A stretch of DNA of 64,000 nucleotides from NCBI GenBank assembly GCA_001179505.1, contig CDMY01000431.1, forward strand, positions 13,874 to 77,873, in the 5' to 3' direction. Source of the stretch: Vitrella brassicaformis CCMP3155. Lineage: Eukaryota > Protista > Chromerida. The position numbers and the translations under genes were made by a program. Below are positions 25,679 through 64,000 of the stretch, piece after piece. Position 1 is the stretch's first letter, and each line of letters opens with the position of its first letter. The notes below the pieces were generated by a model. That model searched no databases. It saw only the letters and a program-made list of their open reading frames with translations, and was not told where the DNA came from.

Positions 25679-26394
25679 TTTGAGGAGGGATTGTGTTGTG
25701 TTGTGGGTGGGGGGGGTGCGTGGGTGAGTCTGGTCTTTTGTTATGCGTGCAGCGGAGACATGCACGCAGTAACACCTATCAGTGGATGTATGAGGTGTTT
25801 TCGGGTGGAAGGAAGAGAGAATGAAACGAACGATCGCTGTCTACGTTTTATATCTGTCTGACAGGTTTGCACCTTCCCCATGCATGAATACTTTCCCTCT
25901 GCCCGTGTCTCAGGAACAGCCAACACACGCAATACTACAGAACAAGCACATACGGCCCACCCGCCCGCCAGCCTACGGCAGCTTCCCAACACAGAGAACT
26001 CACAGCCACCAAACAATCACTCACGAGCAGAAAACACAGTGGCGCCATAGCCCACCCACAGGAGCTGCTATGACACACACAGGTGTGTCTCTGCTCGTCC
26101 ATGTCTAGTTGCAAATCCACTGGAGCCACAGACAGACAGACAGACAGCCCTTCCACTGCGGAAGACACATCACGCCGCCACCGCCATAACGGTCAGTCAG
26201 TCAGTCAGTCAGTCAGTCAACTCTACTCTCTCTCTCTCCTCAGCTTGCCTGCGCCGCCGTGCCATGCACACAGCCACCAAGCCATCGGCAGACAACATGG
26301 ACATGCACATCCGGGGGGCAGACAGCGGACAGCGTTTCAAAAACCAAAGAAAAAGCACTCACTATCTATCTATCACAGGTGGGAGAGCAGATCT

Positions 26395-38323: not shown

Positions 38324-39129
38324 TATGGGCGAGCGGGGCACGTCGATTTGTGGATGGATGGATGGATGAGGGGGAGGGGCAGACGGGCGGGCAGGCTTTG
38401 ATGTGTGCATGACTAGATTGCTGTCGCTGCCTCACTGGCTGCTTCCTTTGTGTGGGTGGACGGAGAAAGGGGAGGCAGACAGGCCAGCAGATGGACAGCC
38501 CGGCACTGGTCGGTGTGAGTCATTCTCATGTGTTCACTCAGTGGCACTCAACATCCAGTCGGGTGTCACCGACGCGAATGCCGTGGTAGATGCTCACCTG
38601 CTGCCAGCCTGCCTGCCTGCCCGCCTGTGGAAGGTGGAGATGGCGGCAGGATGTTGTGAGGTGCGTTTAGTGGTGTTGACTGAATGAGTTCACCTGTTGG
38701 TCGTGCTGGTACATGGCTGTGTGCAGTGGATGACCGAACTACTGAATGACATTGCATGATGGTCTCGATTGGTCGACACGCACAAGACAGCGGCTACTCG
38801 TTTCGCTATGCGTCAAATGCCTTTCTCTCTCGAGGATGAGAGAGACGGCACACACCCTCGTGCACGGCACAGGCAGGCAGAAGCGCTCCACCACACAGCC
38901 ATCCAAAGAGATATATAGATGTGGCGAGTGAGTCAATAAAGCAGCCAAAGGCAGTCACACATCGGCCTCAGCATCACATCAAAATCGGCCAGCAGCGGAT
39001 CTTACCGCACCAGATGAACCCACACCCACACCCATCAGAGCCAACGTAGACCGACTGACACCCATCAGAGCCAAGCCAGCCATTCGGTCACACATCAGCA
39101 GCAGCAGCTGTGTCTCGAAGAAACGGATC

Positions 39130-40330
39130 GCCTTCAGAGATGATGACAGCCAGCACCCAGGGGATACCCTCCTGACGACACACACACATACACACACAGG
39201 GGGCAGGCAGGGCGACATTCCCTCATGGTGACAGAGGGACATGTATCGCTGCTCACCCACCAGCCATTGACTGAGGGATCCATCGGCTGCACCTCAACTG
39301 CGCCACCGTCACCTGCCGAAGCCACGACACACACTCACACACGCGAATGAATTTGATGGATGTGGGGGCATCTGTGGTTTGTGTGGCTGCCTTTATCCAC
39401 ACCGACGGTGTCAGTATCATCGCCGCTGCCATCGTCTGAATCTGCACATGCCGCACACAAACAGAGAAGGCCACTGTCGTTATCTCGCAGCGCTTGAGCA
39501 TCATCTTGTACTGCGCACACACCCACACACACACTGTGCATCTCTGCTTCTGCAAATCGCAGCTGCAGACGCACCCACAAGTGCGTTGTGTGTGCACCTG
39601 ATTGATCGTGGGAGTCCCTAGTCGTCCTGCGGCACTCGTTGCACCTGATTGGTCATGCAGTCTTCTCTTGCTCCATGGCCAACTGCCCGTACGTCTCTCG
39701 GTGGCCGCCGAAGCGGCCAAATATGCGTTAACACACAGACGAGAAGAGACACGATGAAGTTCCTTTAGGGCCTTCCTTTCTCCCTCACCTACGCAGCGGC
39801 GGGCTGCCGGGGGCAGGCGTGGATGAAGTAGGTGCATCGGAGATATAAGAGGGAGACAGTGATCCATCTGCACACACACACACGAGACACATACGCACGA
39901 CCTGATCAGTATAGAATACTTCGACAGCTCACCTTCGATGTGCAATTGGCGGGACAATACAGTGCAGTTCAAAGTTGTCATCGGCCGATCTGCACACCAC
40001 CCATCCCCGGAGAGAGAACACAAGACAAGTATCCCTTGTGTGTGTGCGTGTGTGTGTGTGTGTGTGCTGTTGGTCTGGCTATGGCTTGTGACGGTGCCGT
40101 CAACAAGCGACGTACTGTTCTCCAACACACATAAACACACGAGATGACGTTGGTCGCCTTAGTATTCCCCTCTGGTTCGCCATGATGTTGTCCTTTTCAG
40201 CATGCCGCAACTTCATCTCCAACAGCACATTCATCTGTGCGTCAGACATCCCCTTGCTCTTCCGCGTGTTGTCAGCCTCGAGGTCACGCTGACATGGAAG
40301 ACACAGCTGCTGCGAGAATGAGAACAAGAA
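39130..40330 (-). CDS. Possible multi-exon gene, unknown function
   Basis: Protein-like segments ([26 protein letters not shown]; [20 protein letters not shown]) between microsatellite introns; structure not resolved. Confidence 0.25.
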
Positions 40331-40339
40331 GCCGATCGA

Positions 40340-41085
40340 ATATAAAATGTAGGCAGCAATTGAAGGCCTGCAGACAGACACACAGACAGACAGACAGACA
40401 GACAGGAAAGAAATCAGTCGGTCTGTTTGCACTCGCCCCACACGTTGGCGTTCGTCCACGAGGTAAGTATCCGTGTGGAGGGGGCCGCACGTGCTGGGGC
40501 GCCGTGCATGTCAGGTGGCGTCGCACCTTGAGCAGGTTTGCAGCGTCCATCGTGCCTTCTCTGGCGGCTCCTGCGCCCACGATTGTGTGAATCTCGTCGA
40601 TGAACATGACAATCATCCCTTCGGCCTCCTCCACCTCCTTCAGGACCGTCTCGAGCCTCTTCTCAAACTCTCCTCGGAGCTCGGCACCTGATCGATGCGG
40701 TGCGATGCGATGCCTCCAATGAATGGCGGCAATGAATGGATGGATGGCGATGTGAGCGGCTGGCTGGCTGGACGGCTGACCTTCAATCATGGCGCCCATG
40801 TCGAGAGCTACAAGTCTCCTGTTCTTCAGGGAGTCTGGCACGTCACCCGACACAAAGTCGCCTCGGAACTCGGGCGAGGGGACGCACGGGCTCTCCTCCG
40901 GGCGGGACGAAAGGGGGGAAGCGGACACCGACGACGCCGGGAGGATGGGGCTGGAAGGCGAGGCTGAATGTCCTCATCATCCTCGTGTGAGTGCCGGCGA
41001 GCGGGGAGGTCACTCGCGCGGCGCCAGTGGATCGACACACACGATCGGCGTTTGGCCTCCTTCTCGAGCCTGCATCCACACAATT
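40340..41085 (-). repeat. Partial third copy of the 41.4-43.2 kb repeat, interrupted by a ClpB fragment
   Basis: 40340-40503 resembles 41378-41430 plus 41833-41898 (middle deleted); 40877-41040 matches 41918-42105. Confidence 0.8.
40527..40860 (-). pseudogene. clpB: ClpB/Hsp101 NBD1 gene fragment (two exons, one intron)
   Basis: [23 protein letters not shown]|[54 protein letters not shown]; intron 40688-40780 is GT-AG, phase 1; no Walker A or other ClpB exons nearby. Confidence 0.88.
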
Positions 41086-41462
41086 AGGAAACGACAGGCA
41101 GTTTGACGCAGTACTTCTCCGTGCGTGTCTTGATTGAAGAAACGGTGCGCGCTGTAATCAAAGGGGCGCAGACAGACAATGCCGTGTGGATAATACATGT
41201 AAGAAGGTTGGCGGCTTTTACTGACTTGCGGGCCCTTGGCCCGTGGCGTTGGGCAGCAGGCGTTGACGAGGTTTCCGCCTCCTCCACCTGCTTACAATTT
41301 GACAACAACAAATTGAGCTCAATGCCTACCTGTCTGTGCGCCTCCGTGCACAAGAATCGAAAGAAGAGACTTCAGAATATAAAATGTAGACAACGATTTC
41401 CAGGCCCGACTGCCTGCAGACAGACAGGTATCTCAGTACATGTCTCTGTCCTCTTTTGAGAC

Positions 41463-43237
41463 ACAGACGACCGTCAGACGTCAACACACGCATTCCGGCG
41501 CTTGTTTTGTTTGCAAGCGCCTCCTTCTGTACTTGTCAAGTGCTGTTGGCGGCGGCAAGGGGCGTAGCTTGCTTATAGGCGGCGGCCCGAGAGCAGGCGG
41601 TGCAGGTGGCTGGACGAATGCGTGCTGTTCCTGCATTGAAAGAACAACAAAGGACCAATTGATTCATGATCTTTTCTTCATTTCCTTCCGCCCACCCGTC
41701 CGCGGAGATTCACGTAAGCGGGACCAGGCCCAGTCTGCAAGGGGAGGGGGGGAGGGGTGAAATGCATCTTCCATGCTCATCATAGATCAACAGGTCTTTC
41801 TCTCTGACCCCCGCAGATGGATATCCGTGCCTCGTTGGCGTTCGCCCACGAGGGGGAGGGGAGTTTGCGAGTGGCGGGGGCCGCACAGACTGGGGCGCCT
41901 GAGTGCCGTAGGGGGGGAGGGGACGCACGGGCTCTCCTCCGGGCGGGACGAAAGAGGGGAAGCCAACACGGACGACGCCGGGGGGTCGCACGGGTCCCTG
42001 AGGAGTGGGGTACGCGTGGAAGGCGGGGCTGAATGTCGTCATCATCCTCGTGTGAGTGCCGGCAAGCGGGGAGGTCACTCGCGCGGCGCCAGTGGATCGA
42101 CACAAGCAAAATGCATTATGACCGAACACATGGCCAAATGCACACGTGTGTGAAGAGATCGATGAAAGCACTGTCGTTGAAACCGTTTTTCAGCGGTACG
42201 TTGACCGAATAACCAAGGCCAGGACCCTCACCAATGTCCTGACACGCACACACGAACACACACGCACTCGTTGACGTGTGTGTTCATTTCTCTGTTGTCT
42301 GCGTGTGTGACACACACATGCACCTGTTAGTGCAGAAGAAGGCTTTCGCGACCCCCATCGCCATGGTGTTTGTCAGCCAGTACGCAGTCGTTCAGGTGGC
42401 AAAATCCTGCATGCACACAAACAGAGGGCGAGACCACGCTGGTGGAATTGCTGGTGGCTCAGCCTGTCTGTCTGCGTACATACCAAACGGTCCGTCTTTC
42501 TCCCTGTGGAGCCCTCCCAGCTAAAGGCAATGCGGGCCTTCTTGTGATTGAGGATTCGGGCGCTGTCTGAATACACACACGTGTGTTCTGAGGTCGCCCC
42601 TGCGGTATCCTATGGACGCTTCTGTCATTCGCTCCTCTAGCTCTTTCCAATTGGCTCTTTCTCTTTGCCTACCTTTGCTGTTCAAGGATGGGCGGCAGGA
42701 GCCCCATTCCCAAGCCATTGGCTGCTGACGTCGACCTCATCAGAGGAAAGTCACCATGATCCATATCGTTCAAGGGGCGCCAAGAAGATCTAGATTAAAT
42801 CTCCAAAGTCTCGCACACTCTCTCTATGGGCTCTCGCTGGGAATAGGCCGTGCCGATGACTCGTAGGTCCTCAAACGTCCATGAGGATCGCTGTGGCATC
42901 TGATGCTGACGCAGGAGAGGGGCCACCAATGTGGGGAAAGCTGGGCAGAAAGACGTGCAGAAAGAACGCGGAGTGGGCAAACACACAACCAGAAGTAAGA
43001 TACGAGGGAGAAGTGAGAGAAACTATGAGAACGGAGAAGAACTGGCACGACCCGATTTTTAAATCCTCGCGAGACGGGAGACGGCCAAGATCGAATCTCG
43101 CCGCGAGATTCTCGCCGCAAGCTTGAAAGGTCTTTCCGGCTCTGATGCTTCCAGGGCAGTGGACATCTCTACTGTTCTGCCAGGTAGATAAAGCCACCCA
43201 GGAAGGCTGCCGTCATTGCGTGTGTCACCAACCAACG
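41463..43237 (-). repeat. Long inverted repeat, left copy (at least 1.7 kb), possibly a non-autonomous gene-capturing element
   Basis: Reverse complement of 62298-64000: 41463 pairs with 64000; homology ends at ...gtcaccaaccaacg (43237 / 62298). Confidence 0.92.
42146..42566 (-). pseudogene. Class I histone deacetylase (Rpd3/HDAC1-3 type) fragment, three exons
   Basis: Exon 42566-42484 (D)SARILNHKKARIAFSW plus frameshifted GGLH; exon 42406-42324 GFCHLNDCVLADKHHGDGVAKAFFCTNR; exon 42238-42146 DIGEGPGLGYSVNVPLKNGFNDSAFIDLFTH; GT-AG introns kept. Confidence 0.85.
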
Positions 43238-43289: not shown

Positions 43290-43937
43290 ATGGCCGATAT
43301 GTGGCCTCGCGAGAAGTACCTCATATGGTTTCGGTGGTCGGACTCCTCGCTGTCCACCAACTGTGTGCTGCGCGGCCTCAAGACGGTAGCTGACTTGAAG
43401 GGGGTGTTGGTGAAGGAACACGCGGTGAGGAGGGGGACAGGAGAGGCGCCCAACACCCAACGCGCACACCAACGTCTGTCTTCATGTCGTCATTTGTGCC
43501 TGCAGCATCTCTACAAGATCACGAGCGAGATCGTCTTGTTCGGCCGTGCCGGTGAGCCGTCCACCGATGCCGACGACCACAAGACTCTCGACGAGTTCTT
43601 CGGCGAGCTCGGCAGAACAGAAGAGCAGCCGATTGTCATGAGGAAGCCACCGACGGTGCCCAAACTCTCGACAAGTGACTGTCTGTGAGGCCGAGAGAGG
43701 GAGACAGAGGCAGGCCGGTGGCCGGTGTATGTCTCACTCGCTGTGTGTGTCGTCCACAGAGCTCCCCGTTACTCCTCCGGAAGTCACAGGTGAGGGAGTG
43801 AGGGAGTGAGGTGACGGTGCGTTGCTTTCTATCTGGCTTCTCATTCATATGCAGTCATTGGCACAGTCGAGGAGCAGTGGAAAAGGCGGCAGCAAGCGAA
43901 AGACCCGATACCTGCGGCATTCTTTGTTCAAGACTGA
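43290..43937 (+). CDS. Small multi-exon protein with a putative ubiquitin-like fold (3' exons uncertain)
   Basis: MADMWPREKYLIWFRW...LKTVADLKGVLVKEHA|HLYKITSEIVLFG...KTLDEFFGELGRTEEQPIVMRKP; the pattern resembles beta-grasp header domains (inference). Confidence 0.45.
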
Positions 43938-52297: not shown

Positions 52298-52597
52298 NNN
52301 NNNNNNNNNNNNNNNNNNNNNNNNNNNNNNNNNNNNNNNNNNNNNNNNNNNNNNNNNNNNNNNNNNNNNNNNNNNNNNNNNNNNNNNNNNNNNNNNNNNN
52401 NNNNNNNNNNNNNNNNNNNNNNNNNNNNNNNNNNNNNNNNNNNNNNNNNNNNNNNNNNNNNNNNNNNNNNNNNNNNNNNNNNNNNNNNNNNNNNNNNNNN
52501 NNNNNNNNNNNNNNNNNNNNNNNNNNNNNNNNNNNNNNNNNNNNNNNNNNNNNNNNNNNNNNNNNNNNNNNNNNNNNNNNNNNNNNNNNNNNNNNNN
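52298..52597. other. Assembly gap (300 N)
   Basis: Run of N flanked by G-rich sequence. Confidence 1.
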
Positions 52598-53055: not shown

Positions 53056-54240
53056 CTACAAATCCCCTTTGTAGACTGTTGTTGCTTTGTTCATGGCTTT
53101 GATCATGTCTTTGATTGCGTCGGGGTCGACGTAACAATGCATCCCGGACAGGTCGTATGTCCCCGTGATGATGGCGTCGCCAATGGAGATGCCAAAAAAC
53201 TGCGCCGCTGACGGGAGACAGGCAGACACACAGGCAGCACAAAGAGACGAGTGGATACCTGTGCGCGGCATTGTCCCTCTCTCCTTCTGTCAACCTTCAA
53301 GTGTGGGGGCCTTCCGGCACTGAATGACAGGATGGACACGCACATACGACAGGACCGTACACACACATGACAGGACCGTACACATGATGGACACACGTCG
53401 GCTTGCTTACGATTTCGTCGGCAATGCCCTTGCTGAAGCAGAGGCCGGCATGGGGCTTGAGTTCCTGACGCCGTGCCGTTCCTTTAAAGTAGTAGGTTTT
53501 CCAAGCACGCCCCGTCTTCTCGGCCACGCACACGTGGGTGACCTGGCCGTCCTCTGCGAGTGGGCAGCCGCCCACCCTGTAGTCCCACGCTTTCGTCATG
53601 TAGACTGTGCAAGTGATATCCCTGCCTGCATGACGCCAGCCAGAAGGAAAAACACAGATAGATGGACGGATGGATGGATGGATGGAGAAATGGGTGGATG
53701 GTCCTGAGATGCGCACCATTACTAGGCTGACGTGCGAGGGCGCTGTCGAGGGATTCAACGGCAGCGACGCTGATCTCGTGGGCGGCGGTGGAGAGTTGGT
53801 GGGCGTGGTCGAGCTGCTGCTGGATGAACGCTAACTCTGCAATGCCATACACACAAATGCATTCATTGATTGTGTTGTGTTGCTCTCGCGTACTTACCCT
53901 GGGAAGCCGCTTCCGTGCTGTCGGTCTTATCAGCCGACTTGAGGGCCAGAAAGCGCGTCGGCGACACTGCATGCAGCCATCATCCACACACATCAGCTGC
54001 ATCGCATGGTGTTGTGTTGTCGGTTGCTAACGTACCATCAGCAGCGCTTTGTGTGTTGGAGGGAATCGCTGCGGCCATGAGACCGACAGCCAGCAGCGCC
54101 ATACACAGCACCAACGGCATCTTCTTACGAGCAGACACCACCGTCGGACTCCCTTATCGTTGCCTGCGGGCGAAACAACAAGGAACACATCTCGCCTTTT
54201 TGAGCTGCGAGCTGTCGATCTGGGGCAAGGTGAATTTCTG
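53056..54240 (-). CDS. Multi-exon gene of unknown function (5' end uncertain)
   Basis: Exons IAELAFIQQQLDHAHQLS; GRDITCTVYMTKAWDYRVGGCPL...WKTYYFKG; AQFFGISIGDAIITGTYDLSGMHCYVDPDAIKDMIK-stop. Confidence 0.5.
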
Positions 54241-54263
54241 GGGCTAAAAGACCGCTTTCTCAA

Positions 54264-54375
54264 CCAAAAAGATGGCTTCTTGCCCAAAAAGATGACTCGC
54301 CATTGCAAAAAGATAGATCATCCATCCAAAAAGACAGTTCTTGACCAAAAAAGAACAGCTTCTTGACCAACAAAC
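54264..54375 (+). repeat. Degenerate ~20.5-bp tandem repeat with phased A-tracts
   Basis: CAAAAAG cores with A-tracts starting at 54266, 54286, 54307, 54328 and 54347. Confidence 0.75.
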
Positions 54376-54941
54376 CAAGGAGCCAAGTTGCTGCCGAAAG
54401 ATGGCCTTCTCATGCAGCCTGACAGCATTCTGAGGCACAATGCATTGACAGCCTTTTGACCAGCCTGACAGCTGCTCGGCCACAATCACACCTTTGCAAA
54501 TTAGAATGACGAGTGTTTGACCATGAAGCCAACTTCTGCCCACGCAACATCATTGTCGCACAAACACAAACACAAACACACACACACATATCCATACCCA
54601 GGGGCATCACTTATGTGCACTCTACATGTCAAGGACTCATGATCCATGACGGGCTCGGGTTACATTTGGCATGGATGGAAGGATGGATGGATGGATGGAA
54701 GCCCATTGGAAAAATGGATGTTGGCTTCTTGCTTGGGGACGCACACCTTACTTTCGTTTCGCGTGTCTCGTGACAGTTCACAAATCATTCAGGCGACAAT
54801 CGGCCGATGAATGAAAAAACTGTCAATCACTGCGCTACATGCACACATACGAGTCACTGTCTGTCTCTCTCCGCTCTACTCGCTCGCACCTCATAGAGAG
54901 GTGTGCCACCAAACCCCCCACCCACCTCATACTGATTGTGT

Positions 54942-55468: not shown

Positions 55469-58120
55469 CACACACACAGAGATACACATGTGTGTGTGTG
55501 TGTTCAGGTCATGTGTGTGCGTACCTGCCCATGGTCCTGAGCTTTCTCCTCCTCATCGTATTGGTCTTGTTCATCGTCATGCCCCTCATACCCTTCATTG
55601 AAGGGATCTCCATCCTGCACACACGACACACACACTCACGGGTCAAGCATGTGTGGACGGTGGATGGTGCTAATAGCTACTGACTGACTGACTGACGTCA
55701 TAGTAGTTGTCGTCGCCCCAGTCCATCGAGTCCTCCTCACCCATACTGAAGTCATCGATGTCCTGACACCCCACCCCACAGACAGACACCGACGGATGCA
55801 CACCTGTCTGTCTGTCTGTCTGTAGGGTGGCCTACCTGTTACGCATACATGCAGTGGTGCCAGACGGTGTACTGCCTACGTACTAGGTCGTCGCTGTCCT
55901 CATCGAAACCATCGTCGTCGATGTCATCGTCATCGAATTCACTGTCAGTGTCGAAGCCTTCGGGGGGCTGCAACGGGCCGTCTGCACACACACACGCAGA
56001 GAGAGGGAGGGAGATGTACACTGTGTGAAGGGGGGAGGGGGAAAGTACACACACACTGCCTCTCTCTCTCCCTCTGTGTGTGTGTGTGCGTGTGTGTGTG
56101 CCTGTGTGTGCTGACCGATTTGTGGGTCGTCCGTGTTTGTCAGCTGCGTCAGGTCGAAGCGGAAGTCGCTCGGCTCGTAGCCCAGGACGATGCGCACACG
56201 CTCGCCCGGCGAGTGGAGGCCAAACGCAGGATACAGGAGGCGGTCGTGGGGATGGCTGTCGGCCGCCTGAAGAGTGAAGGCATCACACCACACCAGGCAC
56301 CCGTGTCTATGGGCTATGTCTGCTGGGGCTGGCTACATTGAGCTGGACGCATCGGACATTCTGGAAGCCGACACCTGACACACAACACAGACAGACAGGG
56401 AGACAGACAGGGTACTGGTTTGTGTCGATTGTGTGTGGGCGTCACGTCTAACAGGCGTGTGTGGGCACCGCACCGAGGATTTCTCCGTTTTTGGTGAAAA
56501 AGATCTTCCTCTGTCTCCTGAGCAGACCGCAGCCGATCACCGTACCCGACGGCCACCTGTGGATGCAGTGCCACATCCATCCATCAGACGCAGAGAGAGA
56601 TGAATGGGTAAGCAAGCATTCTTACGGATGGTTCTCGTCCCAGCCAATGCCGTGGCCTGCACACACACCCCACACACACACATACACACACACACATACC
56701 TCCGTCTGTCCGTCCGTCCCTCCCTCCCTCCCTCCCTCCGTGTGTGTGTGTGTGCGCGTGTCTGCACCAGCGTCGTGGAAGAGTTTGCCGTCGTCTCCGT
56801 GATAACCGTAGCTAAACGCGTCCCATCCCACCTGCCTGCAAACCAACAAACAAGACAAGGCTGTGTCTCTCCATCCATCCATCTACGAGTTGGCGTCGCG
56901 TCCAGACCTTGCAGTGTTATAGTCAGGCGGCACCACCCCGACAGAGATTCTGCACTGCTGGCCCGCATCCACAATCTCCACCTCAAAGTAGCACACGTTG
57001 GCGGTAACCGGCCAGGGGTCACTCGTGTGCAGCACCGCTACCGGCAGACCACCGCCTGCCGGCCTGCTCACACACACACACACACACGCACGCACACACA
57101 CACAGAGAGAAAGAGAGAGAGATGCACGGAGAATAGTTGTGTGTGCCTTGTGTGTGGGACGTACCTGTTGGCCGGAGGGATGTAGTCGTACTCGAAGGGG
57201 CCGTGAGATCGCAGAGTGGCTGGCAACCTTCACACATCGACACACAGGGAGAGAGGGAGCACACTCCCGTCCATGTGTGTGTGTGTGTGTGGAGATCGCC
57301 TGCCTACGTGCTGTGCATGGTGTGTGGACGCCCCTCGACTATCATGCGCTTGTAGATGGCCTTCCGGCTGCTGCTGGCAGGGAACTACACACACACACAC
57401 GCACACACACACAGAGAGAGAGAGAGAGATGTATCTAAACCCACACAGACACACCCACACAGACGCACGTTGCGAGGACCTGTGTGTCTGCCTGGAACGG
57501 AAACTTCCTATTGCACAGAGGGTTCCACACGACATTATGCTCAGACATTGCCTTGAACGAACTTGACACCTAACACACACACACACACACACACGAACAA
57601 ACAAAGAAACCGATCCGATCCACGCCTGGCTTATCCATCCATCCATCCATCCATGCCGCATCTTTCATTCTCATTTGCCCCCCACCATGGCGCATTTCGC
57701 CAATGTCCGATCGCCGCACATCTGCAGTGAAAGCATTCACATAATAGATAGGCAAAGGCTGCCGCGTGTGTCAGTCATGTCAGTCAGATGTGTGTGAGCA
57801 AGCCTTCGCAGCAGCTGACTGACCTTGAACACATCGCTCCAGACGGCGTGCTCGTCACTTGCACCACCACCAGCAGCACTCTCACTGTCACCGACAGCCA
57901 TTGGCTGTGCTACGGCGGCCCCGTCAGACGCACCGGCACCACCAGCAGCGGCGGCGGGTGGGCCATTGGCAGCAGCGGGAGCGTCCTCCATTGGTTGGTC
58001 GTGTGTCGTCACGGTGTCGCTCATCGGTCCATCACCCCAACAGACAGTCGCCTGATGGAACGAAACACCAGGACACACATCCATCGGATTGAATGCATCA
58101 GAGTGCTGCTGGTGCCACAT
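54942..58120 (-). CDS. SPRY-domain protein (RanBP9/10/Ssh4-like) with a long acidic, Trp/Gly-rich tail; 5' end uncertain
   Basis: VCYFEVEIVDAGQQCRISVG; FSYGYHGDDGKLFH; GTVIGCG..RKIFFTKNGEILG; LYPAFGLHSPGERVRIVLG; tail GWDDGYVEGDWHDQDDPF...DWDGVDD-stop. Confidence 0.85.
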
Positions 58121-62297: not shown

Positions 62298-64000
62298 CGT
62301 TGGTTGGTGACACACGCAATGACGGCAGCCTTCCTGGGTGGCTTTATCTACCTGGCAGAACAGTAGAGATGTCCACTGCCCTGGAAGCATCAGAGCCGGA
62401 AAGACCTTTCAAGCTTGCGGCGAGAATCTCGCGGCGAGATTCGATCTTGGCCGTCTCTCGTCTCGCGAGGATTTAAACATCGGGTCGTGCCAGTTCTTCT
62501 CCTGTTCTCATAGTTTCTCTCACTTCTCCCTCGTATCTTACTTCTGGTGGTGTGTTTGCCCACTCCGCGTTCTTTCTGCCCTGGGCCAGCTTTCCCCACA
62601 TTGATGGCCCCTCTCCTGCGTCAGCATCAGATGCCACAGCGATCCTCATGGACGTTTGAGGACCTACGAGTCATCGGCTCGGCCTATTCCCAGCGAGAGC
62701 CCATAGAGAGAGTGTGCGAGGCTTTCGAGATTTAATCTTCTTGGCGCCCCTTGAACGATATGGATCATGGTGACTTTCCTCTGATGAGGTCGACGTCTGC
62801 AGCCAATGGCTTGGGAATGGGGCTCCTGCCGCCCATCCTTGAACAGCAAAGGTAAGCAAAGAGAAAGAGCCAATTGGAAACAGCTACAGGAGCGAATGAC
62901 AGAAGCGTCCATAGGATACGGTAACTGCAGGGGCGACCTCAGAACACACGTCGCCCCGAATGCTCAATCACAAGAAGGCCCGCATTGCCTTTCGCTGGGA
63001 GGGCTCCACAGGGGGAAAGACGGAGTGTTTGGTATGTACGCAGTACAGACAGGCTGAGCCACCAGCAATTCCACCAGCGTGGTCTCGCCCTCTGTTTGTG
63101 TGCATGCAGCTGGCTGACATACACCATGGCGATGGGGGTCGCGGAGGCCTTCTTCCGCACTAACAGATGCATGTGTGTGTCACACACGCAGACAACAGAG
63201 AAATGAACACACGCGTCAACGAGTGCGTGTGTGTTCGTGTGTGCGTGTCAGGACATTGGTGAGGATCCTGGCTTTGGTCATTCGGTCAACGTACCGCTGA
63301 AAAACGGTTTCAACGACAGTGCCTTCATCGATCTCTTCACACACGTGTGCATTTGGCCATGTGTTAGGTCATAATGCATTTTGCTTGTGTCGATCCACTG
63401 GCGCCGCGCGAGTGACCTCCCCGCTCGCCGGCACTCACACGAGGATGATGAGGACATTCAGCCCCGCCTTCCAGCCCCATCCTCCCGGCGTCGTCGGTGT
63501 CCGCTTCCCCCCTTTCGTCCCGCCCGGAGGAGAGCCCGTGCGTCCCCTCCCCCCCTACGGCATCCAGGCGCCCCAGCCTGTGCGGCTCCCGCCACACTAC
63601 GCCCCTCTGCCGCGTGGACGGACGCCAACGAGGCACGGATATCCATCTGCGGGGGTCAGAGAGAAAGACCTGTTGATCTATGATGAGCATGGAAGATGCA
63701 TTTCACCCCTCCCCCCCTCCCCTTGCAGACTGGGCCTGGTCCCGCTTACGTGAATCTCCGCGGACGGGTGGGCGGAAGGAAATGAACAAAAGATCATGAA
63801 TTAATTGGTCCTTTGTTGTTCTTTCAATGCAGGAACAGCACGCATTCGTCCCGCCACCTGCACCGCCTGCTCTCGGGCCGCCGCCTATAAGCAAGCTACG
63901 CCCCTTGCCGCCGCCAACAGCACTTGACAAGTACAGAAGGAGGCGCTTGCAAACAAAACAAGCGCCGGAATGCGTGTGTTGACGTCTGACGGTCGTCTGT
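62298..64000 (+). repeat. Long inverted repeat, right copy (continues past the window end)
   Basis: Reverse complement of 41463-43237 with small indels. Confidence 0.92.
62953..63344 (+). pseudogene. Class I HDAC fragment, second copy
   Basis: LNHKKARIAFRW plus shifted GGLHRGK; LADIHHGDG(+1 G)VAEAFFRTN; exon 63252-63344 DIGEDPGFGHSVNVPLKNGFNDSAFIDLFTH; GFCHLND is deleted. Confidence 0.83.

Follow-up and report, generated by a model that had tools for sequence, protein, structure and literature searches.

The stretch analysed here (the window) comprises 64,000 nucleotides (nt) of Vitrella brassicaformis CCMP3155, that is, positions 13874-77873 of scaffold C431, which is 77,873 bp long, so that window position 64000 is the scaffold end. 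It carries two copies of a repeat in which pieces of a histone deacetylase (HDAC) gene can be recognised, and this HDAC material is probably a decayed fragment of a non-processed pseudogene, which had died before its duplication and is most likely without function. A previous sequence-only reading had taken the repeat for a product of Pack-MULE or Helitron-like gene capture. All genome searches were made in the assembly of V. brassicaformis CCMP3155 (72,700,666 bp, 1064 scaffolds).

HDAC exon remnants, parent gene and lesions

Three remnants of exons from a class I HDAC (HDAC1/RPD3-type) stand in gene order in the left arm, on its minus strand, with their introns kept, and their peptides follow each other as SARILNHKKARIAFSW, GFCHLNDCVLA, HHGDG(+1 frameshift)VAKAFF and DIGEGPGLGYSVNVPL. 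The two copies of the repeat and the remnants are located as follows.

41463..43237, no strand: left copy of the repeat (repeat finding, blastn, global alignment)
62298..64000, no strand: right copy of the repeat, in inverted orientation, cut off where scaffold C431 ends (repeat finding, blastn, global alignment)
42484..42566, minus strand: HDAC exon-K remnant (SARILNHKKARIAFSW...) (alignment to the C607 gene)
42407..42483, minus strand: retained intron of 77 nt, gtatgt...gcag, positioned as in the C607 HDAC gene (C607 exon map)
42308..42406, minus strand: HDAC exon-K+1 remnant (GFCHLNDCVLA / HHGDG / VAKAFFCTNRCMCVS) (alignment to the C607 gene)
42239..42307, minus strand: remnant of the next intron, donor deleted, acceptor cag kept (alignment to the C607 gene)
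42146..42238, minus strand: HDAC exon-K+2 remnant (DIGEGPGLGYSVNVPLKNGFNDSAFIDLFTH), the best-preserved piece (Pfam, C607 and PDB matches)
63252..63344, plus strand: exon-K+2 remnant of the right copy, 91% identical in protein to that of the left copy (protein comparison)

The HDAC pieces were searched singly, exon by exon, and in the search for the parent they were compared with all the genome loci matching the Hist_deacetyl model. The closest intact relative is a class I HDAC gene on scaffold C607 (locus L009), to which the pieces are about 63% identical in protein (57-66% per piece) and 71-77% identical in DNA. Against the C607 gene, the four high-scoring segment pairs are collinear, with a grouped E of 1.4e-20 in the local database, and the intron positions are conserved, which agrees with the earlier statement that introns are kept. 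Since the central exon of the C607 gene matches human HDAC2/HDAC1 (E 1e-31), the parent is a class I, RPD3/HDAC1-type enzyme. In the C607 gene itself, a run of N lies inside the intron between the fragment-equivalent exons (L009 4379-4677) and hides the true length of this intron.

The Hist_deacetyl profile, which had been proposed as a check of the translated pieces, gave a partial answer: the DIGEG exon (exon K+2) is the only piece reaching PF00850 (E 2.1e-4), its 21.2 bits lie under the cut-off of 27.9 bits, and Pfam gave no match for the other HDAC pieces. When the genome was scanned with the same profile, the DIGEG exon appeared with E 0.12 and 0.46; it also matches PDB chains of the HDAC family (E 7.6e-6) and the C607 exon (E 3.8e-12). 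The fragment spans only about HMM (hidden Markov model) positions 95-220 of a domain of about 300 residues, or about 40% of the catalytic domain, and tblastx against the C607 gene found no additional HDAC exons upstream at 42.5-45 kb or downstream at 39-42.15 kb. That is to say, a score above the HMM cut-off, intact motifs in one frame and a full-length domain, by which a functional class I HDAC would be known, are all missing here, while collinear consecutive exons, intron positions matching the parent and disabling lesions, by which a non-processed pseudogene fragment is known, are all present.

The lesions were read from the alignment of both arms with the C607 exons, and four of them are common to the two arms. 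First, a 7-nt deletion destroys the GGLHH catalytic motif in exon K; second, a deletion of about 54 nt takes out ALEFLKYHHRVVYVDID, including the DIDI part; third, an insertion of +1 nt in HHGDG|GV shifts the reading frame; fourth, a 37-nt deletion removes SFHKYGDYFPGT (FHKYG..FPGT) together with the splice donor. Because these four lesions are common to both arms, the HDAC piece was dead before the duplication. Beside them, the right arm has two private losses, one of 26 nt that takes away GFCHLNDCV and one of 15 nt that takes away the acceptor of the first remnant. The statement that each copy has lesions of its own therefore holds, and the peptide order previously read holds in the left arm only, GFCHLNDCV being gone from the right one. 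The exon formerly described as absent (the TVSFHKYG..FPGTG region) is really the 37-nt deletion within exon K+1.

The fragment is about 25-29% diverged from the nearest parent, and the two arms are 3.7% apart. The order of events was thus as follows: a genomic-DNA copy was made of a class I HDAC gene over three successive exons, introns included; deletions and the frameshift then deprived the copied piece of its catalytic motifs and of its reading frame; later, a segment of at least 1.78 kb holding the dead piece was duplicated within the same scaffold; and the arms have drifted apart by 3.7% and 9 indels. The second copy presumably came from ordinary segmental duplication, and the HDAC fragment presumably does nothing today. 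Small RNAs against the parental HDAC, which had been suggested as a possible product, are argued against by the divergence of the fragments, which is 25-35% from any parent.

Among known systems, a non-processed pseudogene in a segmental duplication resembles this case in its kept introns, its partial gene, its frameshifts and deletions, and the carriage of a dead piece by a later duplication. It is unlike this case in one respect, for the window piece lies inside a dense one-direction patchwork, which is atypical of a simple duplication.

The two arms of the repeat and the scaffold join

The repeat search of the window found inverted blocks that are collinear between the arms at 92-100% identity, and blastn of one arm against the other aligned 41463-43237 with 64000-62298 at 92% over 1783 columns. 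In the global alignment there are 1632 matches and 63 mismatches (96.3% at aligned bases) together with 9 indels of 3, 24, 26, 1, 15, 6, 6, 6 and 1 nt. The amount and the kind of these differences make them true divergence rather than sequencing noise. In the genome-wide search (72.7 Mb) the repeat unit occurs in two copies, both on C431. Just two copies of a duplicated HDAC pseudogene had been named in advance as the outcome that would speak against gene capture, and this is essentially what was found.

The inner boundary of the repeat (43237|62298) is abrupt: the final 138 nt are identical in the two arms, the flanks beyond are unrelated, and the letters at the junction are ...CACCAACCAACG|TATAG in the left arm and ...CACCAACCAACG|ACACA in the right arm. 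The outer limit is hidden, as the right arm runs off the scaffold, and position 41463, which had been given as an end of the repeat, is the mirror of the scaffold end. The Z repeat at the edge of the left arm (listed in the next section) is the probable reason for the scaffold break at the mirrored point. Between the arms lies one gap.

52298..52597, no strand: scaffold gap of 300 N between the arms (window sequence)

Because this gap separates the arms, their inverted orientation and their spacing of 19 kb depend on a mate-pair scaffold join; the earlier description of inverted copies is therefore kept as to the two copies, while the orientation rests on the join. It might further be supposed that the duplication, or at least the inverted arrangement, is an artefact of assembly or scaffolding. 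The right arm stops exactly at the scaffold end, the 300-N gap separates the contigs of the two arms, the assembly is a short-read scaffold build (PMC4501334), and the arm borders the multi-copy repeat Z, a typical site for an assembler to break. On the other side, collapsed or duplicated reads would be near-identical, whereas 63 substitutions and 9 indels, mostly of several bases, separate the arms, and each arm joins different unique DNA at an abrupt boundary inside assembled contigs. The organism is, moreover, a clonal culture, and its vegetative cells are thought to be haploid, which also counts against an artefact. Such an artefact is very unlikely, and the doubt touches only the orientation and the distance of the copies, not the existence of two of them.

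The patchwork around the left copy

The left copy lies in an intergenic patchwork of 4.5 kb (38.8-43.2 kb), in which pieces of HslU-like, HDAC and ClpB genes are interleaved with truncated members of three non-coding families. The patchwork is limited by an ankyrin gene ending near 38.3 kb and by a plus-strand open reading frame (ORF) starting at 43290. Its pieces, apart from the HDAC remnants, are the following.

42801..43137, minus strand: HslU/ClpX-like 5' region and start of exon 1 (MPQRSSWTFEDLRVIGTAYSQ...), with a stop after 34 codons; full copy on C130, 76-79% in DNA (HslU E 4.6e-6)
41833..42104, no strand: segment A'B', three copies, on C431 only (genome search)
41145..41460, no strand: Z, truncated member of a dispersed non-coding family, 78-89% to at least 5 loci, abutting the left copy (DNA comparison)
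41049..41148, minus strand: end of HslU-like intron 1 and start of exon 2, 90% to C130 (DNA comparison)
40872..41039, no strand: A3, third partial copy of segment A, 98.8% to the right arm and 83% to the left arm (DNA comparison)
40520..40853, minus strand: ClpB/Hsp104-type fragment, two exons and an intron, 78% over 334 nt to the C562 gene (DNA/protein comparison)
40443..40503, no strand: B3, third partial copy of segment B, 76-78% (DNA comparison)
39543..40037, no strand: Y, dispersed non-coding family, 74-82%, with tandem copies on C283 (DNA comparison)
38845..39465, no strand: X, third dispersed non-coding family, 68-70% (DNA comparison)

About 220 nt of unique DNA separate the HslU-like 5' piece from the HDAC remnants, and about 370 nt separate A'B' from Z, while the Z piece and the second HslU-like piece overlap by 4 nt at 41145-41148. 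The ClpB fragment sits exactly between A3 and B3. A3 is near to the right arm only; B3, unlike A3, is equally far from both arms (about 77%), and this difference suggests patchy gene conversion among the A and B copies. X, Y and Z are regarded as non-coding because their conservation is equal in all reading frames and stop codons are present. The patchwork as a whole was presumably built by repeated insertion or template-switch events rather than by one identifiable transposon.

Across A'B' runs a proline-rich ORF of about 150 codons, which is open in both arms (41713-42171, minus strand; 63325-63750, plus strand). Two indels in it (24 and 3 nt) are in-frame, and the ratio of nonsynonymous to synonymous differences (pN/pS) is 0.59 from 27 changes, not significantly below 1. 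The ORF has no Pfam match and no other source in the genome. It was also considered as the next HDAC exon and rejected, as it gave neither a Pfam nor a tblastx match and has no other genomic source.

These data bear on the proposal that the repeat is a live divergent or chimeric gene, made up of an HslU-like promoter and first exon, HDAC-derived exons and then the A'B' ORF. The pieces do stand in 5'-to-3' order on one strand, beginning with a copied 5' region that bears an ATG, and the A'B' ORF, with its two open copies, in-frame indels and pN/pS of 0.59, points in the same direction. Nevertheless, a stop interrupts the copied first exon once 34 codons have been read. In the HDAC remnants there are frameshifts, a splice donor is gone and catalytic residues are missing, with more frame-breaking deletions in the right copy. 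Furthermore, the 27 changes do not bring pN/pS significantly below 1, and no Pfam match exists besides the weak one of the DIGEG exon. A live gene of this kind is improbable in the extreme, and the HDAC piece is still read as a dead fragment.

Just beyond the patchwork, an ORF on the plus strand (43290-43688, MADMWPREKYLIWF...) starts 53 bp past the inner boundary of the left arm. It has a weak match to Peptidase_C78 (UFM1-protease-like, E 0.05) and DNA relatives on C810 and C444, and it probably represents exon 1 of a real gene that faces the copied HslU-like 5' region head-to-head.

The dispersed 21-nt motif and the mobile-element question

A motif of 21-23 nt, [AG][AG]ATATAAAATGTAG-N-CA-N-CGAT, emerged from the comparison of the repeats. 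With at most 1 mismatch it is found 1002 times in the genome, against 0 for the reversed control, often in same-direction arrays with a spacing of 0.6-5 kb and with unrelated DNA on either side. In the window there are 3 copies where none is expected.

41377..41397, plus strand: motif copy ATATAAAATGTAG-N-CA-N-CGAT (motif search)
40340..40360, plus strand: second motif copy (motif search)
25833..25853, minus strand: motif copy (motif search)

In the Y and Z families, the likeness between copies ends exactly at the last base of the motif, and the far ends are variable. The window copy of Y lacks the motif at 39990-40040, where comparison with loci L030-L032 shows a clean gap of about 24 nt with both sides aligning. 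On this alignment, the motif appears to behave as a small insertion/deletion unit in Y.

At least 7 isolated HDAC fragments exist in the genome, and they come from 4 parent genes. The C607 gene accounts for the two arms in the window; the C289 gene for fragments at C982:159.8k (L011), C982:99.3k and C158:70.9k (L013), at 81-83%; the C499 gene for a fragment at C499:280.9k (L015), 5 kb from the parent gene and 65% identical; and the C596 gene for one at C464:43.9k (L017), at 66%. The five fragments outside the window, 4 of which were read, are isolated, contain introns and are 90-520 nt long. All the detected fragments include the central HHGDG region, perhaps because detection favours it. The C982 and C158 fragments have nothing in common beyond the HDAC piece and the motif, and the ClpB fragment of the window likewise has the reverse complement of the motif downstream. 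No motif is present in the eight loci holding complete HDAC genes. The motif behaves like a junction beside which gene fragments accumulate.

The role of the motif can be read in more than one way. Like a 3'-end signal, the copy at 25833-25853 is placed about 600 nt past the final exon of a real gene, and the Z family, on the other side of the motif, has small exons with canonical splice sites reading away from it, which would fit a gene start. Its candidate roles are those of a junction in mobile DNA, of a gene-end signal and of a promoter element; as between a 3'-end signal and a TATA promoter, the evidence conflicts. Two other candidates were rejected. As a relic of a spliced leader (SL), the motif shows only a loose likeness to the dinoflagellate SL, no GT donor follows it and short-period SL arrays are absent; no report of SL in chromerids was found in the literature. 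As a coding peptide it does not fit, for its variable positions are unlike wobble positions.

The motif brings in the main alternative, namely that an unclassified family of mobile or amplifying elements, with the 21-nt motif as its junction, captured the fragment, the arms being two insertions or two copies of its cargo. Possible routes for such a carrier are transduction or end-bypass, similar to that of Helitrons or to the 3' transduction of long interspersed nuclear elements (LINEs), or template switching by a reverse transcriptase (RT) on unspliced RNAs. In favour of it are the 1002 occurrences against 0 in the control, the exact ending of Y and Z at the motif with variable far ends, the C289-derived copies on C982 and C158 that have only fragment and motif in common, the position of five of five HDAC fragments within 750 nt of the motif in one orientation while complete HDAC loci are without it, and the uniform direction of the gene pieces in the window. 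Helitron Rep (PF14214) is moreover found at no fewer than nine loci, none of them on C431, at some of them in long open frames of up to 804 aa, and Helitrons may be active in the genome now or may have been so recently.

C366:90944, C200:166527, C571:49721, C227:657-659k, C326:93.4k, C219:56-58k, C347:154.7k, C239:22.3k, C314:17.8k: Helitron Rep loci (profile search)

The annotated Helitron total in the genome is 18 kb, and unclassified repeats amount to about 13 Mb (PMC4501334).

Other points stand against it. The window unit exists in just two copies on one scaffold. No pair of terminal inverted repeats (TIRs) flanks the patchwork or the repeat unit, the inverted repeats of the window being the arms and microsatellites (the right outer end is unseen). 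Neither a Helitron TC/CTRR end nor a hairpin was found at the visible boundary 43237|62298 or at the motif, the other end of the unit being unseen; the terminus of the motif reads ...GCAGCGAT, unlike the Helitron CTRR, and no poly-A follows it. The MULE transposase domain (PF10551) has 0 matches in the genome, the assembly of which is incomplete. The loci read show no motif-linked transposase or RT gene, the Rep loci coincide with none of the listed X, Y and Z matches, the ORFs of the Z-family locus L025 contain no Pfam domains, and no RNA family was matched in 38-64 kb. In addition, fragment and motif lie anywhere from 9 to 750 nt apart, and the motif may be a gene-end or regulatory signal, as the copy at 25833 suggests. 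As the repeat unit has just two copies, both on C431, and bears no hallmarks of an element, its capture by a Pack-MULE or a Helitron, as formerly proposed, is not supported, and capture by an unclassified element is on the whole unlikely.

Several observations nevertheless weigh against reading the HDAC repeat as an ordinary duplicated pseudogene. All four recognisable gene pieces in the patchwork point the same way, which random break repair should not give. The scaffold stops short of the unit's outer end, where the termini of a mobile element might be hidden, and the genome does contain Helitron Rep genes. The A'B' ORF, open in both arms with in-frame indels, means that part of the repeat could be a live exon. 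Finally, the reverse complement of the motif follows each of the five independent HDAC fragments that were read, at a distance of 9-750 nt downstream and always in one relative orientation. The background is 2.2% of strand-positions, measured in about 204 kb of loci that were not chosen for the motif, so that five out of five has P ~5e-9, and this hints at a systematic carrier.

It is accordingly conceivable, if doubtful, that a genome-wide process which preserves orientation copies short intron-containing gene pieces and deposits them next to the motif. The motif would then be the junction of an undescribed carrier, for which the candidates are a transducing element without the hallmarks of Helitrons, MULEs or LINEs, and an RNA-templated formation of patchworks; the HDAC repeat of the window would be one product of this process. 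Of the original proposal, the DNA-level copying of part of an HDAC gene stands, and the broader idea of spreading fragments is kept alive by the patchwork and by the association with the motif, while the named elements are not.

Each of the known systems agrees with some of these features and differs in others. Helitron capture of the maize type resembles the patchwork in that several unlinked genes have contributed neighbouring fragments, with introns and all in one orientation, and the genome encodes Rep; it differs in that the window unit has neither 5'-TC nor 3'-hairpin-CTRR at its visible end, occurs in two copies and has no Rep/Hel gene nearby. Pack-MULE transduplication likewise captures gene fragments with introns at the DNA level, but no long TIRs flank the patchwork and no MULE transposase domain is present in the genome. 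For reference, Pack-MULEs make target-site duplications of 9-11 bp, and Helitrons insert at A^T. Fork stalling and template switching or microhomology-mediated break-induced replication (FoSTeS/MMBIR) and filler DNA of non-homologous end joining (NHEJ) also join pieces of 100-600 bp from dispersed loci by tight junctions; these usually mix orientations, whereas the window pieces are one-directional and the fragments are tied to the motif. LINE-1 3' transduction and retrocopies made by RT template switching have in common with the present case a conserved end beside carried host sequence and a fixed orientation, and the variable far ends of Y and Z resemble 5' truncation. They differ in that no poly-A and no motif-linked RT gene was seen, and the retained introns need an unspliced or antisense RNA as template.

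Taken alone, the duplicated HDAC fragment is of little import: it gives no sign of function, and its annotation as a deacetylase or as a captured regulator is unwarranted. It is a well-dissected case of a seemingly common pattern, in which same-direction patchworks of gene pieces lie near a motif of about 1000 copies. The fragment itself is ordinary, and the genome-wide process is worth study. Chromerids are the nearest photosynthetic relatives of the apicomplexan parasites, and if the process is real, its specific mechanism would give alveolates a new route by which exons are shuffled and gene fragments spread. Some of the 13 Mb of unclassified repeats (PMC4501334) might be due to it as well. 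Either way, gene predictions in patchwork regions can be chimeric.

Between the arms, two further dispersed repeats are present. The one at 54196-54590 belongs to a family of about 390 bp with at least 8 copies (71-89%), and the segment at 56048-57356 (1.3 kb) is 80% identical to C347:193976-195284.

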